From: Paragordius varius
Lineage: Eukaryota; Animalia; Nematomorpha
Assembly: GCA_964247055.1 (NCBI GenBank)
Contig: OZ176050.1
Span: forward strand, 2,976,001 to 3,040,000
Length of the DNA: 64,000 nt
Direction: 5' to 3'
Shown: positions 42,058-45,000 of the stretch, piece after piece
How the letters are laid out: every line of letters starts with the position of its first letter
How positions within the stretch are numbered: the stretch's first letter is position 1
Position numbers and translations under genes: made by a program
Notes under the pieces: generated by a model
Seen by the model: only the letters and a program-made list of their open reading frames with translations
Told to the model about the DNA's origin: nothing
Database searches by the model: none

Positions 42058-45000
42058 ATGGATAATACATGTTATTTGTCACCGACCGTTCAACGTGACA
42101 CGAATCCAGCATTGATACCGTCAAATATATTTTACATGAATAAAAATGGCAATACTTCTTCGCCTGCTATACAACAAAATTTTATGAATCAAATAACAGC
42201 CACCACTAACAATACAACATCAGAACAGACAAAATGTCCAAATATAACCTTTTGTGTCGACCAACCCTTAGATTTATCTACAAAGAAAAAACGGCCTTAC
42301 ACTACAAGTTCCTCTGTTTCATCGTTGCAACCTATCAATGGAATTATCCCCAAAGAGTCGAATAGATTGAGTGAAACTAAAAAGATTATCGATTCGAATT
42401 TGTCGTCGTATAATTCGCCTCAAAAACAGTTCTCAGAAAAATTTAATTCCTCTACTGAATGGAATGGTGATTGTTCATTGTCAAGAGCGCATACAAACAA
42501 CTTATCTGAATCTGTTAACAGCAATAACTGTACTAATACACAAACTGATCGTATAATCAAATCTCAATCACACAGTTTTGCTCAACAAAGCAACAATGGA
42601 GCTTCGGGTAAAACCAACACCAAGCCAGCGTTTAAAAGTTACGCTACGGGCGGTAAATATTCTTCCCCTTACATTCCGCTACCCCCATCTCCCTATTATT
42701 ATTATGGGGAGGATGGGAGTCTTATATTATCTGCTCTGTTTTCTCCACTTTCCGTCCCGCCACCTTCAAATAAACCAATCAGTTCACCAAACACTCCTTG
42801 CGGTGGAATCGAAACCCTTAATCCATCATCAGTTATTGCAAATTCACTGAGCATTGAGCAATCTACTTCTACTACTACAGATATACTGCAAAGTACTTCA
42901 CCTCGCACAATTAATGTCAACAGTGAAAAATCATTTTGCAATCCAAATAGTATTAATAATGATAACCATTCTTTCTCTGGACAAAGTAATGTTACTGTCC
43001 TCCACCAAGAAAAACCTTCTCATACTTCAGGTACTTGATGTAATTGAATTTAATCTGATGTGCTATTTTTATTTAATTCAAATTTTATCCTAAAACACCT
43101 AATATTAATTATTCAATTTTTTTGCCACTGCTCTAATTCGATAAATGATACATATTTTTGTTGGCGCCCTTTCCTATTTTATCCATTACAACAATTGTGT
43201 TAAGGGACAAAGAAAGATTAATTTCCTGACTATGCATAATTACACGCAAAAATTGTGATTTAAATATTACCGGAATTTTTTCTTACATATTTTCTATGGA
43301 CTCATTGATCCCTTCCTCCCTTTTTTTGTGTGTCAAGAATAATCTCCTTTTACTGACCATAAATATATTATAGCATAACATGACATATAAATCTGATTTA
43401 CCTATATAACAAAGAGATGGAACCTGCTGTGCTTAATTTTTTTATCACAAAAATAATATTAAAAGGGGAAATTCAAATATTTTTTCTGTATTTTTATTAT
43501 TTTTATAAAGTAAAAATTATTTAAACAAAATAAAAAAACTTTAAGACAATTGCAAAATTTAGGCATTAATTGTATCTATTATAATTGTAGTAGGATTGAA
43601 TCAACAAATAATATGTCACCGTCCAATCTTTATTTGTCAAAAAAATTAAATTTTGAAAATTGAAACATTTCCAACCTTAATATTAATATTTAGCTGTAAA
43701 CAAATTATATATTGTTGAGCGATCTATACAAAAAGGGTACAACCTATAAACATTGTCGTTTAATTATATATATATATATATATATATATATATATATATA
43801 TGGCGTTTTAAATCATACAGCCCCTAAAAACTATATTTATATATCCTGATCTCAAATTAATTCGCACAACGAAATATAAAGTATAAATTAACCAAGCAAC
43901 TTTAACGCTTATAATCACACACAAAAAAATGCTAAAAAAATTGAAAAATTGAAAAAAAACGACCAAAATATGAGAGAGACATCTGTTGCTTTTTTTTCTC
44001 TCTTCACACAATGGGACAAAGTTAGTGTGACAGAAGTTGTTATATTTGATATTGCTTTCCTGATATCTATACTGTGCTGTTATATACAGCATATATTGTG
44101 GTGGTTATATTTATAAAGTGTGTTGTGTTGTTATTAGTGAAAAGGGCAAACATTGTAATTTTAAACTTTTTTACTATATTATATTATATATTTTATTATT
44201 AAACTTGGTATAAACAGGTGTCTTGAACCTTTTATATCTATATATTATATATATCATAACGACAAATTTTATTTAAGGAACGTTTTTAATAGTTTATGTA
44301 GCTTATATTCAATTATTAAATCCCATTAAATTTACAAACACGAATTTAGCTTTTCGTCAAATTTAAGCGATCGAAAAAAAAACTTTAACATCCGAAGGAT
44401 TTGCAAAGACTTACGATACATATTTGATAATTCCCAAAAATTGATTAAATTTTGTTATCAAACTTAATTGCTTGATTCATTGTCGTAAAATCAATTCTAC
44501 ATATAGATATATGGTGTGAATTTATATATCACGATTCAAATAATATAACTTAAAATGAGTTAGGCAAGGCATATGGTCACAAAAGTTACAATTTTTTTTT
44601 TCATGTCAATAACCTTATAGCAAAAATTTTCAAGAAAATAATGTTATATTTATCAATTCCTTTTGTTAAGTATATATGTATAACTTTTCTTTTAAAACTC
44701 AAATCAATTTAAATGAATAACATTAGCCATGAGCTATGCATAAGGTGAGAAAATTATGAATATCTAATTGACGACTAATGTAGAATAAAAAACAAGATAA
44801 CATCTTAAAATTCTTTATTCCCTTCCAATGATTCTAAAATTTAATAAATTATAACTGTTTTCCTTTTTAAGAACATCCACATATTTACATATTTATGCTT
44901 TATGGAATAATAATTTGTATAACATATATAACAATGTTTAAGTAATTTATGCGTGGTTAAAAATTTAATTTTTTTCACACTTGATTAATTAAACGCGCCA

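Follow-up and report, generated by a model that had tools for sequence, protein, structure and literature searches.

The locus examined here raises the question of whether an apparently self-contained open reading frame (ORF) in a nematomorph genome is a gene in its own right or the first coding exon of the CSL transcription factor Su(H) and, if the latter, whether it equips that protein with its own docking peptide for the corepressor CtBP. The ORF (42058..43038, forward strand, 326 amino acids) lies in a 64,000-nucleotide (nt) stretch of the gordiid worm Paragordius varius (GenBank assembly GCA_964247055.1, contig OZ176050.1, positions 2,976,001 to 3,040,000 of the forward strand); this whole stretch is called the window, and positions are counted from its first letter. 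Judged by its sequence, the 42058 ORF very probably opens the coding sequence of the CSL gene. The fuller reading, in which the ORF is exon 1 of the single Su(H)/CSL gene of a gordiid worm, the gene encodes a protein of ~1510 amino acids (aa), and its PLDLS pentapeptide is the nematomorph version of the PφDφS motif (φ = I, L, M or V) and docks CtBP directly, is considered probable.

Direct reading of the window places the opening ATG at 42058 and, within the frame, the stretch 42265-42297 that the first-pass annotation had singled out; as claimed there, its codons 70-80 specify the PLDLS motif followed by a basic patch, with a glutamine codon just before (42262-64). The phase 1 donor (CAG/GTACTT) sits at 43031, two codons ahead of a TGA in the same frame (43036-38), and the acceptor AATAG/GT at 45658-59 restores the frame of exon 1 across a glycine codon (G/GT). 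From exon 2 the frame continues over the donor at 47164 (phase 2), the acceptor at 47500-01, the donor at 47937 (phase 2) and the acceptor at 48103-04, past which it enters the CSL signature; the residues SYGSEKR stand directly before the junction of exons 3 and 4. The splice chain proposed at first reading, from 43031 to 45659 and over two further splices into the CSL core, holds in its frame and in its GT-AG sites. Once the exons beyond this chain were placed by tblastn with a protein of the nematomorph Gordionus (P0003, introduced below) as guide, the rebuilt gene extended over 42058-51580, with 11 exons, GT-AG introns throughout, a coding sequence of 4533 nt, 1510 aa and one terminal stop (Table 1). 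The Pfam family LAG1-DNAbind falls on exons 3 and 4, and the joined frame stays open through the CSL core, which starts at about aa 952; PLDLS (aa 70) is located ~880 aa upstream, close to the ~870 aa first estimated. Pfam recognized no family in exons 1 and 2.

In exon 2, the reading frame becomes open 16 nt ahead of the acceptor and runs on for 233 codons before any ATG appears in it; exon 2 must therefore be internal and cannot start a protein. In this very AT-rich window (23-36% G+C), the chance of the frame staying open over 233 codons is ~1.5e-7 at the local stop-codon frequency.

A second nematomorph shows the same arrangement. Exon 1 was compared by a word search and by an exhaustive HMMER search with 1.84 billion representative proteins, among which its sole true relative was a protein of 286 aa from Gordionus sp. 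m RMFG-2023 (P0001, CAK9296396.1), annotated as an "unnamed protein product"; a streptococcal repeat protein (P0002) that also surfaced in the HMMER search was judged spurious. The 90% cluster of this Gordionus protein includes the RefSeq model XP_065315414.1 (P0003; 1205 aa), whose N-terminus matches that of the 286-aa protein (PLDLS at aa 41) and leads into a linker, followed at aa 711-1089 by the Pfam domains LAG1-DNAbind (1.5e-44), BTD (1.2e-54) and TIG_SUH (3.6e-22). Exact look-up of the RefSeq protein led to the Gordionus locus (L001, OX940784.2); look-up of the 286-aa protein matched no contig. At this locus, exon 1 (6037-6853) ends at a phase 1 donor (A/GT) followed by a stop after two codons, intron 1 of ~10.2 kilobases (kb) is in phase 1 and introns 2 and 3 are in phase 2, the same phases as in the window; an in-frame stop lies 4 nt upstream of exon 2, 83 codons pass before the first ATG, and exon 3 closes with SYGSEKR, as it does in the window. 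Exons 4-11 of the window gene are 76-98% identical per exon to the Gordionus protein (tblastn), which bears out the earlier argument against a pancrustacean source and marks the window species as a horsehair worm related to, yet distinct from, Gordionus; overall identity of the CSL core is 71%, below the per-exon values because of an insertion. The N-terminal arms are only ~20-24% identical overall. A word search with window exon 2 found no relatives, and when the Gordionus linker (residues 273-710 of P0003) was searched in the same way, no cluster-representative protein of 663-2109 aa in the collection proved to share it; the RefSeq protein itself, as a non-representative member of a cluster represented by the 286-aa protein, lay outside this search set.

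Exon 1 is under purifying, coding selection. In comparison with a genomic DNA sample of the same species label, ~5% diverged from the window (sequencing run X4), third codon positions account for 13 of the 18 substitutions listed for exon 1 (P = 8.5e-4), 12 of the 18 are synonymous, and none lies within the PLDLS motif; only the best-supported differences are listed, and they are hence a sample. Runs X3 and X4 are genomic, since their contigs cover intron 1. Over positions 42000-47990, X4 differs from the window by ~5% and by many small intronic indels; the indels listed in exon 2 (47091-47098) total 6 nt and stay in frame. Divergence on this scale points to a very diverse species or to a cryptic sister lineage.

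The pentapeptide PLDLS is the single PφDφS match in the 1510-aa model, and it recurs exactly at a colinear site in Gordionus, where it shares with the window protein an FC pair 3-5 residues upstream and a lysine at +2. By the composition of each exon 1, PLDLS would be expected 4.5e-4 times in the window and 1.3e-3 times in Gordionus; the corresponding values for the wider pattern P[ILMV]D[ILMV][ST] are 5.7e-3 and 8.6e-3. By analogy, PLDLS is a canonical CtBP ligand and belongs to the class through which Su(H) of other protostomes binds CtBP. The patch behind it, described at first reading as resembling a nuclear localization signal, is indeed present as KKKRP, but it is specific to the window species; its Gordionus counterpart reads SMKRADI.

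Built-in CtBP motifs in Su(H) are established in the literature for many protostome phyla, as the first-pass annotation had stated. In the survey of Miller et al. (2019, eLife 8:e48115; PMC6777938), Hairless is confined to Pancrustacea, and PφDφS motifs are reported from the non-conserved Su(H) N-terminus of myriapods, chelicerates, an onychophoran, annelids, molluscs and nemerteans, and also of brachiopods, phoronids, monogonont rotifers and some flatworms; the nematode Su(H) is without PφDφS. The PVDLS motif of Su(H) in Strigamia binds CtBP in pulldown assays in a motif-dependent manner; the tested fragment is described as "exons 2-3", i.e., the motif is encoded upstream of the core on separate exons (Miller et al., 2019), and the placement of the motif on its own distant exon, first thought to be unusual in the window gene, is consequently not a peculiarity of nematomorphs. 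A second motif, GSLTPPDKV, is located C-terminal of the CtBP motif and binds Gro; it is missing in several motif-bearing members, among them ticks, spiders, a rotifer and a flatworm (Miller et al., 2019), and since several members lack it, it does not define the family. Nematomorpha are absent from Miller et al. (2019), and literature searches found no later addition of the phylum.

As modeled, the nematomorph proteins share with these protostome Su(H) versions the CSL core preceded by a non-conserved N-terminus with PφDφS on upstream exons; in the published lineages, which lack Hairless, the motif is often followed by S or another residue and then a basic residue, for example PVDLSSPRP or, in Brachionus, PIDLSSKKSK. 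They differ in carrying PLDLS instead of the commoner PVDLS, in an N-terminal arm that is far longer (~950 aa in the window species, ~710 aa in Gordionus), in the lack of a canonical GSLTPPDKV, in place of which there is only YVLTPPSP, and in an extra block, PPSPYYYY...PPPSNKP. The motif as such also invites comparison with the C-terminus of adenovirus 5 E1A, GQPLDLSCKRPRP, where the CtBP motif abuts a nuclear import signal (PMC5930299). Aligned with the E1A C-terminus QPLDLSCKRPRP, the window segment is identical at 9 of 12 positions, and the pattern QPLDLS-x-K..RP is common to both. This likeness is treated as convergent, E1A being an unrelated viral protein; an E1A-like overlap of CtBP and importin sites is not a shared nematomorph feature, since Gordionus does not share the basic patch.

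In the mechanism proposed for the nematomorph protein, Su(H) would occupy target enhancers when Notch signal is absent; its disordered N-terminal arm would dock into the PXDLS cleft of CtBP directly by means of PLDLS, and this direct docking would keep the targets repressed by default, with no need for an adaptor of the Hairless kind, until binding of the Notch intracellular domain to the core switched the complex to activation. CtBP binding and repression are attributed to nematomorph Su(H) here by analogy with characterized systems. As in the Su(H)-Hairless system of Drosophila, CtBP would be brought to CSL-bound Notch targets for default repression; in Drosophila, however, the adaptor Hairless recruits CtBP (through PLNLS) and Gro indirectly, whereas the nematomorph docking peptide would reside within Su(H) itself. 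Vertebrate RBPJ and LAG-1 of Caenorhabditis elegans are built on the same CSL core as Su(H) and likewise change between repressing targets and activating them in response to Notch, yet RBPJ uses separate corepressor adaptors (SHARP/MINT, KyoT2 and others), and the nematode protein has no CtBP motif (Miller et al., 2019).

A built-in CtBP motif in Su(H) has been on record since 2019, and the nematomorph case adds one phylum; the understanding of Notch repression is unchanged, and the gain is a modest addition at the level of gene models and phyla. The published view, which traces direct recruitment of CtBP by Su(H) back to ancestral protostomes, would now extend to Nematomorpha. Given that nematomorph Su(H) carries PφDφS and nematode Su(H) does not, the nematode loss would therefore date to after the split of nematodes and nematomorphs. 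The PLDLS peptide also offers a natural partner for testing the CtBP of the window genome.

The same nematode loss lends some plausibility to a different reading, in which exon 1 does belong to Su(H) but PLDLS does not act through CtBP, and either serves another partner or persists as a relic beside an altered CtBP: the sister phylum Nematoda lost the motif altogether, so that dependence on it can be lost, and CtBP binding in the nematomorph protein is a prediction from sequence. Set against this, the exact pentapeptide has been kept in two species whose arms are otherwise ~20% identical, and high-affinity ligands of CtBP have their archetype in PLDLS, the form found in E1A; a PLDLS that works without CtBP is regarded as quite unlikely.

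The suggestion in the first-pass annotation that alternative promoters toggle between Su(H) isoforms with and without exon 1, which would supplement direct CtBP docking and not replace it, found no support and is rated improbable. Such a toggle could draw on the length of the first intron, 2.6 kb in the window and 10.2 kb in Gordionus, and on in-frame methionine codons farther into exon 2 (in the window at aa 558). When intron 1 and the upstream region were compared with Gordionus by blastn and tblastx, however, nothing was conserved except island 2 of exon 1 itself, and intron 1 yielded no conserved alternative first exon; moreover, the 233 ATG-free codons of exon 2 would turn into a 5' leader of ~700 nt with out-of-frame ATGs.

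Several observations weigh against the assignment of exon 1 and its motif to Su(H) and have to be set beside the evidence in its favor. The submitters' annotation of Gordionus (BRAKER/TSEBRA with RNA sequencing data) has exon 1 as a separate single-exon gene, CAK9296396.1 (286 aa), and the join to the core in XP_065315414.1 is that of a RefSeq model. A search of sequencing runs returned no run recorded as RNA that contained the stretch, and two runs guessed to be RNA (X6 and X7) were empty there, which amounts to an absence of data and not to contrary evidence; splicing of exon 1 to exon 2 in the window species is predicted from the genomic sequence and not from transcripts. Finally, the PLDLS island, taken as a 10-residue window, scores 33 in the comparison of the two arms, when the best shuffles score 31-36, and thus does not rise above noise; its weight derives from identity over all five residues of PLDLS, from colinear placement and from membership in a known class of motif, and not from the window score.

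The first two of these observations would suit an independent gene of 326 aa that ends at its own stop (43036-38), with Su(H) starting from another 5' exon: the 42058 ORF has its own ATG and stop, junction reads are none, and the orthologous ORF in Gordionus is given as a separate protein by its submitters. The stand-alone appearance of exon 1 in both species is explained by the stop that sits two codons past the donor. In both species, that donor conforms to the consensus and its phase fits the next exon, and in neither does exon 2 have a start codon of its own at its beginning; the linkage of exon 1 to Su(H) is conserved even though no other flanking similarity occurs within 6 kb in Gordionus, where the upstream neighbor of the window gene has no match within 6 kb upstream. 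The RefSeq model unites exon 1 with the CSL core, the Su(H) N-termini of protostomes carry just such a PφDφS motif, and no rival ORF of some length and with a fitting donor is conspicuous in intron 1. An independent gene is, on balance, very unlikely.

The two public annotations of Gordionus conflict at this point, one splitting off CAK9296396.1 and the other, XP_065315414.1, joining the same N-terminus to the CSL core. CAK9296396.1 corresponds to exon 1 of Gordionus Su(H) read through the donor into the intron (EISQ/SR, then stop; 6001-6861 of the Gordionus locus). It is most likely the first exon of Gordionus Su(H) in what looks like a split gene model, and to read it in this way corrects the 286-aa entry.

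On the same strand, the upstream neighbor in the window is a gene for a seven-transmembrane GABA-B-like receptor (30841-35349), and ~6.7 kb without long ORFs separate it from Su(H) exon 1. Exon 1 as a 3' exon of this receptor gene was rejected in view of the conserved Su(H) linkage, the similar N-termini (M..TC) and the fitting donor phase.

If exon 1 is taken as the start of Su(H), the N-terminal arm as a whole can be compared between the two nematomorphs. A sliding-window comparison, in which shuffles reach at most 36, detected four islands that are colinear and in the same order in both arms (Table 1). Island 2, with the sequence PPSPYYYY...PPPSNKP, is the only part of the N-terminus that is conserved at the DNA level (75% over 105 nt); in the exhaustive protein search with exon 1, this strongly conserved block (33-47 aa) had no counterpart outside the Gordionus cluster. 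Not the separate exon but the disordered arm of 700-950 aa, together with two further conserved islands, is what is unusual in the nematomorph Su(H).

One of these islands, YVLTPPSP, shares LTPP with the Gro motif GSLTPPDKV and is located C-terminal of PLDLS, on the expected side, at a distance of ~640 aa; LTPP would be expected 0.028 times by chance. Its descent from the Gro motif, as a degenerate counterpart, is a possible but doubtful lead; no match to [GS]SLTPP, WRPW or an eh1-like motif was found in the window or the Gordionus protein. Going further, the compact region for CtBP and Gro may have been replaced in nematomorph Su(H) by the arm of 700-950 aa, with island 2 as a new corepressor or cofactor dock, possibly for Gro; this extension is rather unlikely. 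Should it be true, the conserved PLDLS would be a natural ligand indicating that CtBP of this lineage acts as a corepressor. Three islands centered on P-P-S-P occur along the arm, including one at 46565-46630 and the YVLTPPSP island; two of the three are conserved in Gordionus, and they resemble docking sites or sites of proline-directed phosphorylation.

Table 1. Features of the Su(H) gene in the window, with the colinear islands of the N-terminal arm in Gordionus and their sliding-window scores.
Feature	Window position	Strand	Window aa	Gordionus aa	Island score	Remarks
Exon 1	42058..43030	+	1-324 plus one base			start codon, PLDLS, conserved island 2
PLDLS island			68-78	39-49	33	
PLDLS, canonical PxDLS/PφDφS CtBP-docking motif (predicted)	42265..42279	+	70-74	41-45		same pentapeptide in Gordionus
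KKKRP basic patch	42283..42297	+	76-80			possible monopartite nuclear import signal
Conserved island 2 (PPSPYYYY...PPPSNKP)	42658..42798	+	201-247	182-228	64	27/33 residues identical to Gordionus
Intron 1	43031..45659	+				2629 nt, GT..AG, phase 1; longest intron of the gene
Exon 2	45660..47163	+	325-825			N/S/T-rich low-complexity linker
Conserved island 3 (YVLTPPSP)	46820..46867	+	712-727	488-503	45	colinear with Gordionus
Exon 3	47502..47936	+	826-970			end of linker and start of LAG1 DNA-binding domain (Pfam LAG1-DNAbind positions 1-17)
Segment directly before core			937-946	694-703	31	
Exons 4-6, CSL core	48105-48303, 48396-48570, 48677-48814	+				tblastn with Gordionus P0003; GT-AG
Exons 7-10, CSL core	48910-49022, 49189-49329, 49847-50005, 50457-50560	+				tblastn with Gordionus P0003; GT-AG
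Exon 11	50989..51580	+				C-terminal TIG domain with N-rich insertion; stop 51578-51580

Within the core, the TIG domain of exon 11 carries an N/S-rich insertion of ~110 aa after the residues CLMFVVP, with ~60 aa at the same place in Gordionus; a folded domain here holds a low-complexity loop peculiar to the lineage. Simple repeats occur in several introns of the gene. An (AT)24 microsatellite (48627-48676) abuts the acceptor AG of exon 6, with the consequence that the intron before this exon is without an ordinary pyrimidine tract; a second dinucleotide array, (TA)18, is located in intron 1 (43765-43801). Intron 10 contains two short tandem arrays of a 21-nt unit (50645-50701 and 50819-50892), whose consensus units are mutually reverse complementary; they form an inverted pair ~120 nt apart, possibly a hairpin or the remnant of a small mobile element.

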